From: Chlorokybus atmophyticus
Taxonomy: Eukaryota > Plantae > Mesostigma and Chlorokybus algae
Direction: 5' to 3'
NCBI GenBank assembly: GCA_009103225.1
Contig: RHPI01000560.1
Coordinates: 726,524-790,523, forward strand
DNA: 64,000 bases
Part shown: positions 51,725 to 61,065 of the stretch, piece after piece
How the letters are laid out: every line of letters starts with the position of its first letter
How positions within the stretch are numbered: position 1 is the first letter of the stretch
Notes under the pieces: generated by a model
The model's database searches: none
Told to the model about the DNA's origin: nothing
The model's input: the letters and a program-made list of their open reading frames with translations, nothing else
Translations under genes and position numbers: made by a program

Positions 51725-51740
<16 letters not shown>

Positions 51741-51899
51741 TACCATAACACAACAATAAAGTTAGTAGACCTCTAAGATCTCAGGCACCGAAAGGCGAAG
51801 TTGTCGCCCTGAGATTTTGGAGGTCCAGTAACACACAACGAGTGAGGTTAATGGACCTCTAAGATCTCAGGCATCAAGGAATTGACGACCTGAGATCTT
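51725..51899. repeat. Left part of an array of about 81-bp hairpin-forming units
   Basis: Units of form CCTGAGAT(C/T)TT..AGGTC - about 26 nt - GACCT..AAGATCTCAGG - linker. Left arms at about 51725, 51808 and 51889. Confidence 0.9.
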
Positions 51900-52100
51900 T
51901 TTTTTTTTTTTTTTTTTTTTTTTCGTGAACAAAAGTATATTAATAAAGCACGTGAGTTCATAGCATACACAACTACCTGCAGGCGTCCTACAGGCACGCC
52001 TGCAGCTAAAGAGAGGATAACAGTACAGCACAGCAAGAAAGCGCAGCTGGGCTAAGCACTAGTCACGACAGACACTTGAGAGAGAACCATGGACTACACC

Positions 52101-55100
52101 CTAAGCCGAGACCAGTAGAGACCAGCCCTTCCACACCACCGTCGGTCGGGGGAGAGGGGCAACAAACGAGCAGAAAACAGAGTTGCTTCCCCAAGAGTCC
52201 TGGAAGAGAGACAAAGCGGTAGCGCGGGCATCATCCTTGAGCGGGGTCGTGCAAACCTGAAGCCATTCCTCCCGAGCACGTAGCTCCAGAGACTGCTGCA
52301 ACTGCACTCGAAGGACGCTGAGAGGGGGGGAAGAGCTGTCATAGCGGTGGGTGCAGCGGTGGCGCCACAAAGCCCACAGTACAAGCGGGCGAGCGGCTGC
52401 CCATACCCTGTGCAGGGCAGCAGGAGAAAGTCGTGTGCCAACTCCAAACAGTAGCGAGGGGGTGGTGATGTCAAGAACTCCCCCCAGCCTCAAGAACAAA
52501 GCAGCCAGCCATCCCCAGACCGCCTGCGCCGCTGGGCACTGCACAAAAATGTGCAGGATAGTCTCAACACCAGTGTCCCCACAGGTGAGGCAGGAGGGGT
52601 CCGCTCCAATATGTTGAAGACGTTCCCCCGCAAAGACTGCTCCTTGTGCGATGAGCCAGAGGAGAGATCGCTGTTTGCCTACAGCAGGAGCCTTCCTAAT
52701 CACCTGCCATATCCACCGCCACTGGAGGTCAGGCTGAAGAAGCCTCCAGTATCGGGGGCCAGGCACAAGCTGAAGTCTAGGCATGCTCAGGGTCGAGTAG
52801 CCAAGACGCGAAGAGTAGTTCCACATAGAAGACACCCCCGAGAAAGAAGAGGTGGAAGGCCATGAGCAAGCACCCGGATCGCAGTGAAGATCAGAGAGAG
52901 GAGCCCGCCCCACCACCAGCCAGCCAGTGTGGCGGACTGGAACAGGAAGGGCAAGCCAGGCGGGGGAGAAGGCCGCTGGTGCCCTGGCCCAGCGGGAGGG
53001 AGGAGGGAGAACTCTAACACGGCGAAGAGAGGAGAGGGGAAGGACTCTGCCTTCTTCACCTAAGCACAGTTCACCGGACTCCGCCCCTTTCAAGCGAAAG
53101 AGAGTGCCTTGACACTGAGAGGAAGTGCAGCTGGAGACCAGAAGCACCGCCTGGATGCTCCCGTCAGCCTCAACACAAGCCCACCATTCCTCCGGCTTGG
53201 GGAGTTGTGGACCCGCATCTAGCAGAGCACGCCAAGCGAGGGGAATAGCTGCCCACAACAGGGAAAGACGTTGCTGAGTGGCAACTGGAACCCAGTAGCT
53301 AAGTTCAGCAGCGGTGTATGGCCGGAGAAGAATGTCATCCCACAGGTCCTAGATCCTGTGAAACTCCGCTGACGCCCACGGCTTGAGCTGGCGCCTGGAC
53401 GGACCCATCCCCAGAACTCTCCCATCGGCAGAGCGTATCAGGGGGTTGAAAAACAGAGGCTGTCTCAGCACCTCATCATAGCAAAAGGGAGGGGTGAGCA
53501 CAGGCGGAGACACTTTCTGCCAGGCCCGAAGTATGTACTGCCAATGTCGGGCCACCTGGTTGTGCACCTTCAACCCTGAGGAGAGGAGTGCAGCTGCAGG
53601 GGGCATCCACCGTGTGCCCGGGTCCTGTGGATCTGTTACCCAAGCCTCCAGCTGGCGGAAGCCAAGCGCTTTCCAGGGCGCCCAGGTAGGATCCAGTAAC
53701 CTGGCCGCCCACTTGGCAAGAAGTGCCTGAGTCTGCAGCTGCGGGTCCAAGATACCGAGCCCACCTTCTGCTGTCGGCAGGCACGCCACCTCCCACCTAA
53801 CTCTGCCCCGGGCTGGTGACACTGAGGAATCCTGGTTTGTGCGCCAGAGGAAGGCTGTGCAATCCTTCCTCAGCCTGCGCAAGTCCTCTGTCGAGGGCGA
53901 GGCGACTGCCGCAACATACCATAGGCATGACAGGATAGCCAGGTTGGTGACCAAGGCACGGCCCATCAAGGAGAGGTAGTGCCCGGACCAGGTGTTAATA
54001 CGCTGCTGCACCTTGGCCTGGACTGCTGAGAATAGCTGAGACTGCTGCAATGAAACCCCTACCGGAATCCCAAGCAGCGTGGCAGAGGCGCCATCAGTAA
54101 GCCAACGCACCCCCCAATCCGGGGGTGAGGAAAACCTGGCTGTGCCAAGAAGAATGCCAACCGATTTGGTGAGGCTCAAGGAGGAGTCCGATGCCAAGCA
54201 GTATGTCGCCATCACCGAAGAGAACGCAGCATACGCACTGGCAGTGCAACGGAGCAGCACAACGGTGTCGTCGGCAAAGGCAAAATAGCGGATGTCTTCC
54301 TCCTCGCCATGCTGACCTGGAGAAGAGGGAAGAAGGAGGCCATTGCAATCCGGGTGAGCCTTGAGCATGTACCCCAAGGCTTCTGTGGCAAGAACAAACA
54401 AGGCTGGGGCCATTGGGCAACCTTGCCTGACACTCCGCTGAAGGGGAAATTCATCAGACTGAAAGCCATTTACGAGCACAGAACTTCTCCCTCCCCCGTT
54501 GAGCGTGCGAACCCAGCTGCAGAAAGTGGAGCCAAATCCCAAGGCCCTCATCACCGACTCAAGGAACCCCCAGTCAAGTCTATTAAAGGCCTTCTCAAAG
54601 TCCAACAGCAAGAGCGCTGCTGACTGCTCAGAGACCTCCGCGTAATGTATAGCATCCAACGCGGTGAGGATGTTGTCAAGTATGTAGCGGTGCTTGACAA
54701 AACCTGTCTGCTCAGGTGCCAAAGCTTCAGGAAGTATTGGAAAAAGCCGAGCTGCTAAGGCCTTGGCGAGAATCTTGTAGTGCAAAGGCAGAAGTGTGAT
54801 GGGCCGCCAATTGCGCAGATCCCCCAATTCCCCCTTCTTATGAAGCAAGACTATCAGGCCTTGGCGTTGCGTGTCTCCCATGCAGCCTCCTTGTAGTATG
54901 TCCTGGCAGTACTGCGTATAGTCGACACCAAGGACTGGCCACATGTGCTGCCAAAAGCACGCCGTGAAGCCATCAGCACCTGGGCTTTTGTGCGGAGCCA
55001 TGGAGCTGAGCGCAGAACGCAACTCCCCTTCCAACATTGGCGCGTCCAGCTCCACCGCCTGGTCCGGCGTCACCACAACCGGGATATGGCTAAGACACGC

Positions 55101-56449
55101 TGCGAGGGCTTCCTGTTTGGCTGCCACGTCGGTGGGTGTGGAAGAGAAGAGAGAAAAGTAGTACTCCTTGACAGCATACATGAGATCCTGTTGAGAGGAG
55201 AGAGGAGGGGTGTGAGGAAGAAGAGAGTGGCTGAGAGCACTGAGAGGCGCAGCCTGCCGGTCAGCCCGCCCTTTGGCAAAAAAAGACTTGCTCATTCGTT
55301 CCCCTTCAAGACGCCATTGGCTGCTGAACCGAATGAAGCTGCCTGCCAGTGAATTCGCTTCCACCTGAGACAGTTGCTCGCGAAGGCGGGCACACTCCTC
55401 CAGCTGATCCTGAGAAGAAGGGAGGTGTACCAATGCTGTCTCCGCGGCAGCCAGCAACATTCTCAAGGCTTTCTCGTCACGCTGCCATTGAGCTTTTCTC
55501 CTAGCAGTGTGAGCTTTTGCAAGAACAGCAAGCTGTCCCAACCCATCCTCAAACCACCCCACCGTAGGCAAGCCAGCAGGCTTGGAGGACTGTCGATGCT
55601 CCCACAGCTGCTCAGCATCACCACAGAAGAGGGGGTCCTTGAGTAGTGAGGGATCGAACTTCCAGCAGCCCGGGCCTCGGGGAACAGACGCACTGGAAAG
55701 AAGGGAGAGAGCTACTGGAAAGTGATCTGAAAGCACCTCATCCTGTCGAACGGCAACCTCTTGAGCCGGCTCACGTAGTGCACCACTAACATAAAACCTG
55801 TCCAGGCGCGCTGCTCGCCAGGTGTCATCAACCCGACGGTTACTCCATGTGTAAACCTTGGAGTCTGGGTGGAGCACTCTAAAGATGTCCTCCATCTCCC
55901 AACGCCCAAGCAAAGGAGAAAGAGAGCATGCAGAGTGGGTGTCCGTAGTACCAGGGTGTGACCTGTCCCAACCCGTATCCTCAACGAAATTCCAATCACC
56001 CCCCATCACGCACCAATCCGCTGCCGGCAGAGAGGTTGCTAACTGGTCGAAGAAGGTATTGCGCTCTATGACTGTATTGGGAGCGTACACTGACACCAGC
56101 AAAAGAATCCCCGCATCCCACCTGATGCGTGCCCAGCAGCAGCGAGAAGAGATGGCCTCACCAGTGTCCAGCAGCAGCGGAGACATGCTCTGAGGAAGTA
56201 GCAACGCCACCCCACCTCTACTTTCCACCGACGAGGACCACACCGAAGCCCCCTTCCAAAACCTCCGGAGCCATGCTGCTTCTGCAGACTCGTCAAGCTT
56301 GGTTCTTGGAGAAAAAGAACAGTGCGAGCTCCACCAGACCAGGAGCGAACGCGCTGAAGTAAAAGGGAGCGCTTGTTGTTTCCTAGATATGTGGACGGCC
56401 CCCCTAGGCCCCGCACATTCCAGGAACACAGTCTCAGAAGATCAGACAT
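52101..56449 (-). pseudogene. L1 ORF2 (APE endonuclease, reverse transcriptase, zf-RVT) with two lesions
   Basis: SWNVRG, FLQE/TKL (1-nt deletion near 56300), GGDWN, RLDRFY, SDHFPV, KSPGADG, WRPITLL, LDFEKAF, RQGCPMAP, FADD, CLTC...HIFVQC. In-frame TAG at 53349-53351. Confidence 0.95.
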
Positions 56450-59183
56450 GGAGGCGGGGTGAGTCCGGCTGTGCCAGGCCAAACAACTCCTGCAATGTGA
56501 TAGGAACTGCCTCGCCTGCCGACCACTGCAAGGCATCCACCAGCGAGGTGTCCGCTTGTGCTGGAAGTGGAAGCAGCTGACGGGCATTGCTCCGTAGATG
56601 AAGTAAAGCCTGCGTGGTGAGAGGTCCTAGCAAGGCCGAAAGCCCCCCCGACATGGTGAAAAGCTTCCGCACATTAGCCCAATGCACCGGGCTCCCCCCC
56701 GCAGATGCAAAGGGAGCCTCCGAGGTTACCACCCACACCAAGCCTTTGTACACTCCTTTCTCCTGCAAGTACAAAGAGAGGGAACTAGAAGCCGCCTCCC
56801 ACTCCTCCCACTCCGCGGAGTCTGGAAGCTGCAGCACGGCAGCAGCAAGAGAGCACAGCATGTGCTCCGGGCCTGGATCCTCTGTGCTGGGTAAAGCGAA
56901 GGGGAAGTCCGAGCGCGGGGGACACCTGCCCATCCCCAACCACCAATCCCCCTCACGACAACGCAGCACCAGCATGGCGCAGCCCGGAGAGGGCTGTGCA
57001 GCTGGTGAAGCCTTCACAGGAGAGCGAAACATCACCTTTGCTAGCGGCTGCGACACCGGCGACATCGGGGTCGAAGGGGGGATGCTGGAGCCGGCTTCCA
57101 GCGCTCGCGCTTCCGGAAAAAGGCGCTTGCTGATGTGCAAGCGAGGTGGCGGAAAAGATGAGGCACCCAAGTCCGGAGGGGGGGATGGTGTGTGCAGCTT
57201 CCTCGCTCGCCAGTCCTGCAGCGCCTCGACGAATAGACGTCCCAGAGAAGCGGAGCGACCAGCCGACCTGTCTCTCAAGTGCTCCTCCCACTCCGCCAAC
57301 TGGACCCAACGGTGAGAGCCCATCACCTCGGGGGGTGGCGGGAACTGTGCCGCTGAAGTGAGAAGAGGTAGTAAATAAAGCTTGCCTTTGCGCTTGCCCG
57401 GGCCAAACACCAGCTGCATGTTCGCCAGCGCAAAGGAAAGTTCCATGTCCTCTAGCTCCGTGTTGAGAGGAAACCCAACCTCCGCTAGGCTCTCCCGCAC
57501 TGCAGCTCTCAACCATGCCGACGGGGAGGAGGGCTTCCCCGCGGGGGGCGTGAGGCGAGAAACGCGAATGCCGGAGGTTTGCCCGACATCAGACAGTAGC
57601 ACCTTCACCTCCTCGGGCTTGCCAAGCAGCTGTGTGCCAACAAGGGGGGCGATGAAAAGCGTGTCGAAGTCTGCGTCACCTATCTCCAGACCAGCCTCCT
57701 CAAGGGCTGGAGCAACCCACTCGCTGAGCTTGGGCGTGGGGTCATCAAGAGCAGCCAGCGCTGCGAGGGGAAGAGACGCTGCAGGCTGGACAGCTGCGCG
57801 CTCCTCTTCCTCCATCATATCAAACCACGTCTGATGTGGAGAAGGAGCCGTGGTCGGGGCTGGAGGGAGCAGCCAGCGGGTAAGAGAATGTTGGGAAGAC
57901 GGGGCTGGTGGTTGCTTCAAGAGAGCGCCCTTGCTTTTCGCCTTGCCGGCTGGCACCGTTTGCCATTCTCCGGAAGGGGGATGAGCAGATCTGGTGGCTG
58001 CTGGTAGGGGGTCCGCCGGCGCATGAGAGAGAGGGCCAGGAGCGTGCTGGCGAGATGAGGGACCAGCGCCTCTTAGAGGAGCAGACGTTGCTGCAGCGGG
58101 GATGGTGCCAGGAACAGGCGCAGCAACAACTCGAACAGCACCCTCACTCCTGCTGGCTGTGTTGCGGGGGCAACGGGCTCGAGTGTGGCCAGGCTGCGCG
58201 CACAGGTGACACACAGCTGGAGAGGAAGAGGTGATGACATCCACCGTATAAGTCAGCCATTGCTCACCACTCTTCATCCGGAAGGAAAGCTTCGATGGGA
58301 GGACCACACCGTGGCGAGGGAGAAAGCGATAGCGCGTCGTTGCAGTCTCAAACGGAGGAGAGGAGCCGGTTTGCTGGTTTGGAATAGCCGGACCCAAGAC
58401 TCCAAAGCGTTGAATGACCGCACGGGCGAAGGGGAGAAGCTCCGGACGCATACCAAGGAAGGAGACCCACGAGCGCGAAGCGGTTGCATCGTCCCACCGT
58501 AGCACTCGAACACGGCGACCACTGCTGAGGGAGAGCAGGTGCTGTTGTGCCTTAGCATAGATCTGCTCAGCCCCTGCAGCAGAATGGAAAAGGCACTGAA
58601 ATTCTCCGGGGGAGGAGGGAATGGGAAACACCGATGATAATAAGCTACCCCCGAAGTCATCCGCACATACAGACTGCAACCAAGCAAGCCGCACACTGTT
58701 GGCAGAGGATAGAGAGGGGGTAAACTCAAACACAAACACTAATGCTCGTGCACGCAAGGTCTGCTGCCAGAGGTCAAAAGCATCCGTGGGGACAGTGAAC
58801 TGGAAGGTAGAAGCATCCTCCGTGGGAGGGGGAGAAAGAAGCAAGTATGGCGTACAAGCATCAACAACAGCAGAGAGACACTCAGCTGTGGGTATGGGGC
58901 CCCCGGTGGGAGCCCCTGCAGGCGTGGGAGTGGAGCCCGGACGAAGGTGAGGCACGGGATGCCTTCGATCTCCTGTCGTCCAGGCCAGGCCAGCGGCTGT
59001 AGGGGGAGCCGCGGCCTGGTGAGAGAGGGCATTTCGTGAAGGCGGAGCCTCCGGGAGTGGGGGCAAGGAGCTGGTTCTCGGGGAAAGGGTGTCGTCCATC
59101 GCCTCCCCCGAAATCTCCAGCCGATCGCCCTGGTCCATGGCCTGGTCAACGGCCATAAGCTGGCTCGTTGACTGCGCCGCCAT
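56442..59183 (-). CDS. L1 ORF1p, 913 aa: RRM-like region, CCHC knuckle and a long C-terminal extension with Nudix-like repeats
   Basis: Uninterrupted ORF; CHLCAQPGHTRARC; Nudix-box-like GKPSSPSAWLRAAVRESLAEVGF at 57539-57471. Confidence 0.9.
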   Translation of the reverse strand: MAAQSTSQLMAVDQAMDQGDRLEISGEAMDDTLSPRTSSLPPLPEAPPSRNALSHQAAAPPTAAGLAWTTGDRRHPVPHLRPGSTPTPAGAPTGGPIPTAECLSAVVDACTPYLLLSPPPTEDASTFQFTVPTDAFDLWQQTLRARALVFVFEFTPSLSSANSVRLAWLQSVCADDFGGSLLSSVFPIPSSPGEFQCLFHSAAGAEQIYAKAQQHLLSLSSGRRVRVLRWDDATASRSWVSFLGMRPELLPFARAVIQRFGVLGPAIPNQQTGSSPPFETATTRYRFLPRHGVVLPSKLSFRMKSGEQWLTYTVDVITSSSPAVCHLCAQPGHTRARCPRNTASRSEGAVRVVAAPVPGTIPAAATSAPLRGAGPSSRQHAPGPLSHAPADPLPAATRSAHPPSGEWQTVPAGKAKSKGALLKQPPAPSSQHSLTRWLLPPAPTTAPSPHQTWFDMMEEEERAAVQPAASLPLAALAALDDPTPKLSEWVAPALEEAGLEIGDADFDTLFIAPLVGTQLLGKPEEVKVLLSDVGQTSGIRVSRLTPPAGKPSSPSAWLRAAVRESLAEVGFPLNTELEDMELSFALANMQLVFGPGKRKGKLYLLPLLTSAAQFPPPPEVMGSHRWVQLAEWEEHLRDRSAGRSASLGRLFVEALQDWRARKLHTPSPPPDLGASSFPPPRLHISKRLFPEARALEAGSSIPPSTPMSPVSQPLAKVMFRSPVKASPAAQPSPGCAMLVLRCREGDWWLGMGRCPPRSDFPFALPSTEDPGPEHMLCSLAAAVLQLPDSAEWEEWEAASSSLSLYLQEKGVYKGLVWVVTSEAPFASAGGSPVHWANVRKLFTMSGGLSALLGPLTTQALLHLRSNARQLLPLPAQADTSLVDALQWSAGEAVPITLQELFGLAQPDSPRLHV

Positions 59184-59343
59184 GATAATACCAAAAACAA
59201 ATGTGCCATGAGTCCCCAGCGCGGAGGGGAGGCCAACTCAGGGGCGGAGCCCCATCCTTAACCACCCCCCCTGCAATCCCACCACCGCCAACCCTCCCCC
59301 CCAAGCTTGCCGCCGCCGCCGCCGCCTAGGGTTTCCAGCCGTT

Positions 59344-59570
59344 CGACCTGAGATCTTGAAGGTCTGGTAACACACAACGAGTGAGGTTAATGGTCTTCCA
59401 AGATCTCAGCCATCAAGGGATTTACGACCTAAGATCTTGAAGGTTCAGTAGTACACAACGAGTAAAGCTAATAAACCTTCAAGATCTCAGGCATCGAGGG
59501 ATAGACGACGCTGAAACCTTGAAGGTCCAGTAACGCACAACGACTGAAGTTAATAGACCTCCAAGATCTC
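59344..59570. repeat. Right part of the 81-bp hairpin array (three units)
   Basis: Left arms start at 59347, 59428 and about 59509; conserved loop GTAACACACAACGAGTGAGGTTAA variants. Confidence 0.9.
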
Positions 59571-61065
59571 ATGTATGCTGCCTGACAAGCAATGGACCAA
59601 GAATGCTAGTAACACAGTCTTGCAGACTCGGAACTTCAACACATGAGGCTGAAGGGCTTTGGGTGCGGTCGTGATAATACCATCTGAATACAAAAGCAAG
59701 AACTACACAGTAATGAGGTTGCAACATCTGTGTATATGTGTACGCGTGTGCTCTTGTATGCGGATGTTGCATGACTAATGATGGGTGCCAATACATGCCA
59801 ATTGTGTATTTACCAAGGGGCAGCTCCTCTGCTGCAGTACATCGTGCTTACCATGCAGGGAACAATTACATAAGCAACATGGATGTGTGTGCAAATGTCT
59901 TTGCTTGCTGCATCTTGCTGTGTGCATGCAGCTCTATATGTTGCGCTTTTTGGTTTTGCTGATTACTAGCTCAGGATTTACTGCAGCAACTAGCGTGTGG
60001 TGTGCATTATAGTAATATCAATTGTTAGCTGTCAAACGGTGCATACAAGACTATAACGCACGGATATTGTACCTGCTAGGTGGCGCCATGTGTGCTGCCG
60101 CTGATCAAACCCTCCTGCATGAGCGCTGAGACAGCGCAACCCTTACCGCAAGTCTTCATATCCTCAGCGTTTTACGCTAAAACTAGCTTACAGACGTCCT
60201 AACGGTCAAGTAGAGCAGCAAGCTTCAACTCACCTGGCTCGCTCTCGCCACCCCCGATGGCCCCCACATCGCCGCCCATACCACCGCCCAAAGCCAGCAC
60301 TCACTTACCAGCTACCGCACCAGGTCTTTCAACTTGCAAATTACAACTTGCGAGCTTTAACTACACAGTGGGATCTACTGAAACACACTAGCGCCCAGCT
60401 GAAAACAACAAGGCCGCCGCCGCTAACAACCACACAACCGCCGCCGCCGACTAGCTGCACTGCGGCACTAGAGTTGAGCTCACCGAGTGGGGGGGTTAGG
60501 GTTGGGGTACGACGCGCGATTAATGTCGCAGCTAGGAAGCACAGTTTTTCATTGATTGATTTAATTTATTATATCTATACTATATGTATACTCGATCGTC
60601 GATATATTTAACGGACGACAACATTTTTTTTTTGTATTGCTTGCTCTCGCCCCAGTGCTTGCGCTGCATAAGAGTATAACCGGTACAGATACTTATGTGT
60701 GCGCTATTTAGAGTAGCATGTTGCGTGTGTTTGGTTTTATAGAACCCACTTGATGGTAGACGGTAATTACCCCGCTCTTAGTGAAGTGGTTTCAATGAAG
60801 CCCAGCACACGTATTATGCTGGTTTTTGTGCACAAATAATGAAGTGTTAATTTTCAATCCATAATTGTTACACGTAACGTTGGATTTGTTTGTGCATCAA
60901 CATTAATGTGTCATATTTTAATTTTTAATTGTTGCATGTGATGATTGCGTAGATGATGTTATGAGTCTGTCGAGTTATATCATAACTGGATGAAGTGTAC
61001 GCTGGTGGCAATGCGTAAGGTGTTACGTAATGCTTGGCATGTGTACTTGTAACATGCCGTGAGTG

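Follow-up and report, generated by a model that had tools for sequence, protein, structure and literature searches.

An L1-clade LINE of a streptophyte alga encodes, in the C-terminal extension of its ORF1 protein, a segment that we regard as a candidate for a strongly diverged Nudix-fold domain, with a probability of roughly 0.55–0.6. This segment, domain 1, covers ORF1 amino acids (aa) 500–668 (57180..57686) and drew Nudix signals, all below curated thresholds, from Pfam, ESM features, hhalign and hmmsearch. Coordinates refer to the window, the whole 64-kb stretch of DNA that was analyzed, and all features of the element, including both copies of its target-site duplication, are given on the minus strand.

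The element (51899..59343, about 7.45 kb) is a recently inserted, full-length LINE, identified by the similarity of its ORF2 to human LINE-1 ORF2p, by Pfam and by its ends. The similarity to human LINE-1 ORF2p (E = 2e-42, aa 109–865) covered the APE and RT regions, and Pfam detected RVT_1 (E = 7.7e-26) and zf-RVT (E = 6e-12) in ORF2. An APE-RT ORF2 closest to L1 ORF2p, a poly(A) tail and a target-site duplication place the element in the L1 clade. The 5′ copy of the 13-bp target-site duplication, AGATCTCAGGTCG, lies at 59344..59356 inside an 81-bp satellite found around the 5′ end of the LINE (59344–59571); the 3′ copy lies at 51886..51898, and the satellite unit resumes on its 3′ side. The element carries a G-rich 5′ UTR with a (GGC)5 run (59184..59343), an intact ORF1 of 913 aa (56442..59183), an ORF2 with APE, RT and zf-RVT (52101..56449) and a poly(A) tail of 25–26 A (51899..51923). 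The stop of ORF1 and the start of ORF2 overlap in ATGTCTGA (56442..56449). In this copy, a one-base frame change near 56301–56305 and an in-frame stop at 53349–53351 interrupt ORF2.

The ORF1 protein has a plant-type front half with one CCHC knuckle at its end, and about 570 further aa form a C-terminal extension. Within it, linkers rich in Pro, Ser and Ala connect two folded segments: domain 1 and a second globular coding segment, domain 2 (aa 730–885; 56529..56996), marked by a coding-like GC pattern. The zinc knuckle (C-x2-C-x4-H-x4-C; aa 325–338; 58170..58211) was assigned from its sequence and from weak Pfam zf-CCHC matches. In the classification of Khazina and Weichenrieder, summarized in PMC4120745, the Type I ORF1p of plant L1 and other LINE clades has an RRM and then a CCHC knuckle. 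The present element is similar in that its ORF1 lies upstream of an APE-RT ORF2 and its knuckle follows a folded-looking region of about 230 aa; with plant L1 it also shares the zf-RVT in the ORF2 tail. It differs from Type I in having just one knuckle. No RRM could be detected: Pfam gave nothing for ORF1 aa 1–324, and no relatives were found for aa 95–345. Unlike all five described ORF1 types, it has the 570-aa extension with two extra segments beyond the knuckle.

A first-pass annotation had read Nudix motifs in both segments, and all the ORF1 strings it quoted were found at the residue numbers it gave. In domain 1, these are EEVKVLLSD (aa 524–532), LTPPAG (544–549), KLYLLPL (601–607) and HRWVQLAEW (624–632). 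The claim that a stretch of domain 1 has the exact spacing of the Nudix box was also correct: aa 549–571 (57471..57539) read G-x5-S-x7-R-E-S-L-A-E-V-G-F, the spacing of GX5EX7REUXEEXGU. The residues kept are G549 (G1), R563 (R15), E564 (E16), E568 (E20), G570 (G22) and F571 (F23), and those replaced are E7 (S555), U17 (S565) and E19 (A567). The glutamates of REx2EE in the Nudix box bind the catalytic metals. The glutamate set is incomplete in domain 1, with two of the four kept (E16 and E20) and E7 and E19 gone. A search of the window in all six frames found the core pattern G-x13-RE-x3-E-x-G-U a single time, compared with 0.03 occurrences expected from shuffles. Such a match is rare for one window, though no longer so when a whole genome is scanned.

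NUDIX (PF00293) was the sole Pfam match of domain 1 (E = 0.015; 15.7 bits, below the gathering cutoff of 21.1), aligning ORF1 aa 545–634 with positions 32–119 of the 134 in the profile (88 positions). With the entire ORF1, the match had an E value of 0.061 and 13.8 bits, also under the cutoff of 21.1. This score range is noisy, because 2 of 10 wrong-frame ORFs of the same region, used as a control, had unrelated Pfam matches at E = 0.05–0.07. Among the ESM-feature neighbors of aa 495–668, 27 of the top 30 clusters were NUDIX, with a score of 0.95. They were mostly Nucleocytoviricota clusters, plus one Nudt16-like cluster, and the shared-feature count (141 of 256) was in the range of chance matches or distant relatives. 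We also made an independent Nudix profile from 72 viral Nudix ORFs. In hmmsearch it gave domain 1 a score of 4.8 bits, which was equaled in 1 of 1000 shuffles, and it ranked the complete ORF1 only fifth among the 289 open frames of the window. When domain 1 was aligned with the viral Nudix alignment by hhalign, P was 7e-4 over 82 columns, in the register proposed by the first-pass annotation. The best pairwise matches of domain 1 to Nudix sequences all put box on box. A single shared 23-residue box may drive the Pfam, ESM and viral-profile signals alike.

Beyond the box, a downstream Trp motif alone added Nudix signal in domain 1. This motif (the MGSHRWVQLAEWE region; aa ~622–634; 57282..57320) aligns with the conserved Nudix Trp motif at the correct distance from the box, and in a sub-profile test without the box its p value was 0.0175 (35 of 2000). 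The corresponding test upstream of the box gave no signal (p = 0.73).

No homologue was found by word-index protein searches with aa 480–913, aa 482–666 and aa 95–345 or by an exhaustive phmmer search with aa 495–913 against 1.84 billion representatives. Metagenome scans with aa 495–913 and with ORF2, and a viral-contig scan with domain 1, gave no relative; phmmer gave no match in the PDB, and no Nudix family came up in NCBIfam or PHROGs. When the remainder of the 64-kb window was searched by tblastn with ORF1 and ORF2, nothing beyond the element itself was detected. Public reads from two runs of two studies yielded short contigs (150–300 nt) of low depth that were identical to the window, with no diverged copies among them.

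Since none of the searches produced a homologue, AlphaFold was run on single sequences. The resulting AF2 models of aa 495–913 (pLDDT 35) and of aa 500–668 (pLDDT 50, pTM 0.48, with a helix on the box) were too poor to judge the fold. For the low-confidence model of domain 1, no fold search (Foldseek pdb, VIA wide, atlas, BFVD) gave a significant match. Only the weak Foldseek pdb rows were enriched in Nudix-fold proteins, which made up about 11 of the 50 (the MUTYH C-terminal domain, NUDT4, NUDT22, RppH, ADP-ribose pyrophosphatase and Ap4A hydrolase). The shape searches of VIA wide and atlas pointed away from Nudix, to folds such as RNase H-like ones. An RNase H-like domain 1, suggested by weak atlas rows, was rejected for want of a Pfam signal and of a DEDD pattern.

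It is possible, though in our judgment rather doubtful, that the resemblance arose by chance and that domain 1, an alpha/beta domain confined to this lineage, has some other fold, its box being a coincidental helix with flanking glycines. Every Nudix score fell below the curated thresholds, the noise matches of the wrong-frame controls were of similar size, the upstream part was silent, and the shapes of the poor model leaned elsewhere. In addition, a motif expected 0.03 times per window would be expected dozens of times genome-wide. Coincidence does not readily explain why three differently built detectors (a Pfam HMM, protein-language-model features and a viral profile) chose Nudix alone, why the alignment is collinear across 80–90 residues, or why the Trp motif, at the correct spacing, scores independently of the box. 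If the resemblance is nevertheless fortuitous, the finding comes down to a young L1 copy of the ordinary kind whose ORF1 has an orphan C-terminal extension.

The first-pass annotation had proposed tandem Nudix domains. Its proposal gained objective but sub-threshold support for domain 1 (Pfam match, 27 of 30 ESM neighbors, hhalign P = 7e-4) and none for domain 2. The strings it quoted there are CAMLVLRC (aa 735–742), DWWLG (746–750), FALPS (762–766), VWVV (816–819), VHWANVRKL (833–841) and LTTQAL (855–860), and in the proposed register none of the Nudix box residues is present. Domain 2 had no match in Pfam, NCBIfam or the PDB; its only row in PHROGs was an unrelated PHROG without an assigned function (E = 0.12), in the C-terminal tail. 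Against the viral Nudix alignment, hhalign gave P = 0.5, and the sub-profile Nudix tests gave p = 0.3–0.4. Similarity between domains 1 and 2 was not significant (z = 1.1–1.2, p about 0.13), and a tandem duplication of domain 1 is accordingly unsupported. We conclude that domain 2 is a real coding domain for which the Nudix label is unwarranted on present evidence.

We think it unlikely that both segments are Nudix folds, with domain 2 as a catalytically dead partner, perhaps packed as a pseudo-dimer. Such a pair would agree with the 5 of 30 ESM neighbors of aa 722–913 that were NUDIX (at 0.93), with the collinearity of the best alignment of the two domains over about 100 residues, and with the best, insignificant hhalign match of domain 2, which falls in the proposed register. 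It is opposed by the other 25 neighbors, all unnamed bacterial clusters, by the lack of family matches and the p values above, and by the loss of every catalytic position that it would imply for domain 2.

For domain 1, the reading as a diverged Nudix fold draws on several likenesses to Nudix hydrolases (PF00293): the box spacing, G1, R15, E16, E20 and G22, the P-x-G before the box, the Trp motif after it and a size of about 160 aa. Domain 1 differs from them in the absence of E7 and E19, in Ser at U17 and in a Pfam score under the gathering cutoff, and its Nudix fold is putative; unlike free-standing Nudix hydrolases, it forms part of a retrotransposon RNA-binding protein. Within the LINE ribonucleoprotein, such a domain might serve as a binder of a nucleoside-diphosphate-X group or, at best, as a weak pyrophosphohydrolase of this group, and the capped 5′ end of RNA would be its most plausible target. 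Precedents for a role of this kind are known, both among Nudix readers with a degenerate box and among viral Nudix enzymes that remove caps. The first-pass annotation had suggested decapping, ADP-ribose sensing or an effect on dNTP pools as conceivable functions. The C-terminal domain of MutY/MUTYH and the effector domain of NrtR are catalytically dead Nudix folds that read ligands. Domain 1 is like these readers in combining a candidate Nudix-like fold with a degenerate box, and MUTYH was among the weak Foldseek rows; it is unlike them in its protein context, and no sequence relationship to them was detectable. Among viral enzymes, the Nudix proteins L375 of mimivirus, D9/D10 of VACV and g5R of ASFV decap mRNA (PMC8478210). 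A viral origin of domain 1 is possibly indicated by its language-model neighbors, which are the sole basis for it. It would be a long shot to suppose that the module is working or cap-binding, was derived from a giant-virus-type decapping enzyme, and acts on RNA 5′ ends, where it would remove or shield caps, NAD caps included, on transcripts of the retrotransposon or of the host.

Known layouts of LINE ORF1 include RRM with CCHC, coiled coil with RRM and CTD, PHD, and esterase (PMC4120745). No paper linking LINE ORF1 to Nudix came up in our literature searches, in agreement with the earlier statement that Nudix is not among the reported ORF1p accessory domains. If the assignment of domain 1 is true, the Nudix-fold module would be a new class of accessory domain in LINE ORF1 proteins. 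It would suggest that some retrotransposons themselves handle RNA caps or nucleotide-diphosphate ligands, and would provide a directly testable idea of how LINE ribonucleoproteins protect or process their template RNA. With a working or cap-binding module, this would be the first LINE ORF1p described to carry a nucleotide-pyrophosphatase accessory domain.

Other retroelements have gained nucleotide- or RNA-handling enzyme domains, possibly from viruses, as domain 1 may have been. Retroviruses carry dUTPase. Insect TRAS ORF2 carries an RNA helicase, a virus-derived accessory domain in a LINE (PMC5563155). Both differ from the present case in the domain and in the host ORF. The esterase domain of Type IV ORF1p, in the CR1 and L2 clades (PMC3905857, PMC4120745), is comparable as an enzyme-fold accessory domain in a LINE ORF1, and it is thought to act by ligand binding in the ribonucleoprotein rather than in classical metabolism. 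Type IV differs in being an SGNH esterase fold of vertebrate CR1/L2 with clear homology (HHpred above 99%), while the Nudix call here is sub-threshold.

Finally, the extension is very improbably a non-functional product of accidental read-through or of a GC-rich open frame without a selected fold, even though it has no homologue, other frames of the GC-rich element hold several long spurious ORFs and ORF2 of this copy is already broken. The region of domains 1 and 2 is real coding sequence: some 420 codons run without a stop, and the codon-position GC pattern is like that of ORF2. From base composition, we estimated the chance of such a stop-free run at 60% GC as about 1e-6. GC1/GC2/GC3 were 0.67/0.48/0.69 in domain 1, 0.64/0.53/0.67 in domain 2 and 0.60/0.49/0.61 in ORF2. 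Segments that are hydrophobic and look globular alternate with linkers rich in Pro, and ORF2 begins precisely where ORF1 stops, which means that the element is laid out for the long ORF1.

Behind its CCHC knuckle, ORF1 of the minus-strand L1-type LINE in the window carries a segment (domain 1, aa ~500-668) that we consider a genuinely Nudix-derived fold with a probability of about 0.55-0.6. It contains a Nudix-box-like stretch at aa 549-571 (window 57471-57539, minus strand). The first-pass annotation had proposed tandem Nudix folds here, and all the motifs it quoted were found in the ORF1 translation at the residue numbers given. The spacing of the Nudix box (GX5EX7REUXEEXGU) is exact, with E7 replaced by S and E19 by A as it had claimed. 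U17 is also S, and G1, R15, E16, E20, G22 and F23 are retained. The ORF1 region with domain 1 and a second segment (domain 2, aa ~730-885) is genuine coding sequence. Both segments share a GC1-high/GC2-low/GC3-high pattern with ORF2, and they are set apart by Pro/Ser/Ala-rich linkers.

For domain 1, NUDIX was the sole Pfam match, with E 0.061 when the whole ORF1 was the query. Domain 1 alone gave E 0.015 and 15.7 bits, below the 21.1-bit gathering cutoff. The alignment covered ORF1 aa 545-634 and profile positions 32-119 of 134. In an ESM-feature search with domain 1, 27 of the 30 nearest clusters were NUDIX (score 0.95); the neighbours were mostly Nucleocytoviricota clusters of ~200 aa, with one Nudt16-like, and the shared-feature count of 141 is in the tool's range for distant relatives or chance. 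For a profile of our own, 119 viral loci with a canonical box yielded 72 ORFs of 110-260 aa. Domain 1 scored 4.8 bits against this profile, a value reached by 1 of 1000 shuffles, and hhalign gave P 7e-4 over 82 columns; the whole ORF1 ranked only fifth among 289 open frames. In the hhalign register, LTPPAGK fell at the W-x-L-P-G-G-k position and the box was placed as in the first-pass annotation. The box was also aligned to the box in all top pairwise matches. The profile was then split to measure the contribution from outside the box. Its downstream part aligned HRWVQLAEW with the conserved Trp motif, correctly spaced from the box (p 0.0175), and the part upstream of the box gave no signal (p 0.73). 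The proposal of a Nudix fold in domain 1 was supported by sub-threshold Pfam, ESM and hhalign results.

The resemblance of domain 1 to Nudix could instead be explained by chance, which we regard as possible though somewhat improbable. The six frames of the window contain a single occurrence of the core box pattern, where shuffles predict 0.03. It is thus rare locally, but not on the scale of a whole genome scanned in this way, and the box by itself is little proof. In addition, 10 wrong-frame ORFs from the LINE, used as a control, gave two unrelated Pfam matches at E 0.05-0.07; such scores are therefore noisy.

That both segments are Nudix is unlikely. Domain 2 had no match in Pfam or NCBIfam, and the one PHROGs match, to its C-terminal tail, was an unrelated family without a known function (E 0.12). 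Comparison with our viral Nudix profile gave P 0.5 in hhalign and p 0.3-0.4 in sub-profile tests. Of its 30 ESM neighbours, 5 were NUDIX and the other 25 were unnamed clusters from bacteria. The two domains did not resemble each other significantly (z 1.1-1.2, p about 0.13), although their best alignment was collinear. All catalytic positions are lost in the register proposed for domain 2. These results leave the "tandem Nudix" label unsupported.

Word-index protein searches, exhaustive phmmer against 1.84 billion representatives, scans of metagenome and viral contigs and a search of the remainder of the window all failed to find a relative of ORF1. AlphaFold was therefore run on single sequences. 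The pLDDT was 35 for aa 495-913. For aa 500-668 it was 50, with pTM 0.48, and the model has a helix over the box. Fold searches with these low-confidence models gave no significant match. The only hint was that about 11 of 50 weak Foldseek rows were Nudix-fold proteins; since sequence terms enter the score, this is not separate from the other lines of evidence. Nudix was absent from the results of shape-only searches. In public data, pieces of ORF1 occurred in two runs, which belonged to separate studies and carried different organism labels; both contained only short low-depth contigs, identical to the window. Ahead of the CCHC knuckle, where an RRM would be expected by analogy with plant L1, aa ~95-324 (window 58212-58900) looks folded, with no Pfam match and no relatives.

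Nudix enzymes bind their catalytic metals through the REx2EE glutamates. Catalytically dead members of the superfamily, including the MutY C-terminal domain and NrtR, function as ligand readers. Two of the four box glutamates are lost in domain 1, so full hydrolase activity appears doubtful. Most likely, domain 1 would bind, or weakly hydrolyse, a nucleoside-diphosphate-X group inside the LINE RNP, and the most plausible ligand would be an RNA cap. The nearest functional analogy is mRNA decapping by Nudix enzymes of giant viruses and poxviruses (PMC8478210), in agreement with the ESM neighbours of domain 1.

Described ORF1p classes comprise RRM+CCHC, coiled coil+RRM+CTD, PHD, esterase and unclassified (PMC4120745, PMC3905857). 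No publication that connects a LINE ORF1 with Nudix came up in full-text literature searches, which agrees with the earlier remark that Nudix is absent from the described accessory domains. If real, domain 1 would be a new accessory-domain variant of type I-like ORF1p.

ORF1 (59183 to 56442, minus strand; 913 aa) is intact in this LINE copy of ~7.45 kb. Its stop overlaps the ORF2 start ATG (56449-56447, minus strand) within ATGTCTGA (window 56442-56449), which suggests coupling of the two ORFs by termination-reinitiation. ORF2 contains APE, RT (Pfam RVT_1, 7.7e-26) and a zf-RVT tail (6e-12), and among solved proteins human LINE-1 ORF2p matches it best (E 2e-42, aa 109-865). Two lesions disrupt ORF2 in this copy: a one-base frame change within APE (near 56301-56305, minus strand) and an in-frame stop (53349-53351, minus strand). 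A poly(A) of 26 nt forms the 3' terminus. The LINE is flanked on both sides by a 13-bp target-site duplication, AGATCTCAGGTCG, within an 81-bp satellite, so the insertion is young and full length. With target-site duplication and poly(A) pristine, the copy is young yet not autonomous. The satellite is tandem, with 2.8 copies on one side, and carries on at the other (window 59344-59571, 51740-51898); the empty site is readable across the duplication. The 5' UTR (window 59184-59343) is short (160 nt) and G-rich and holds a (GGC)5 run.
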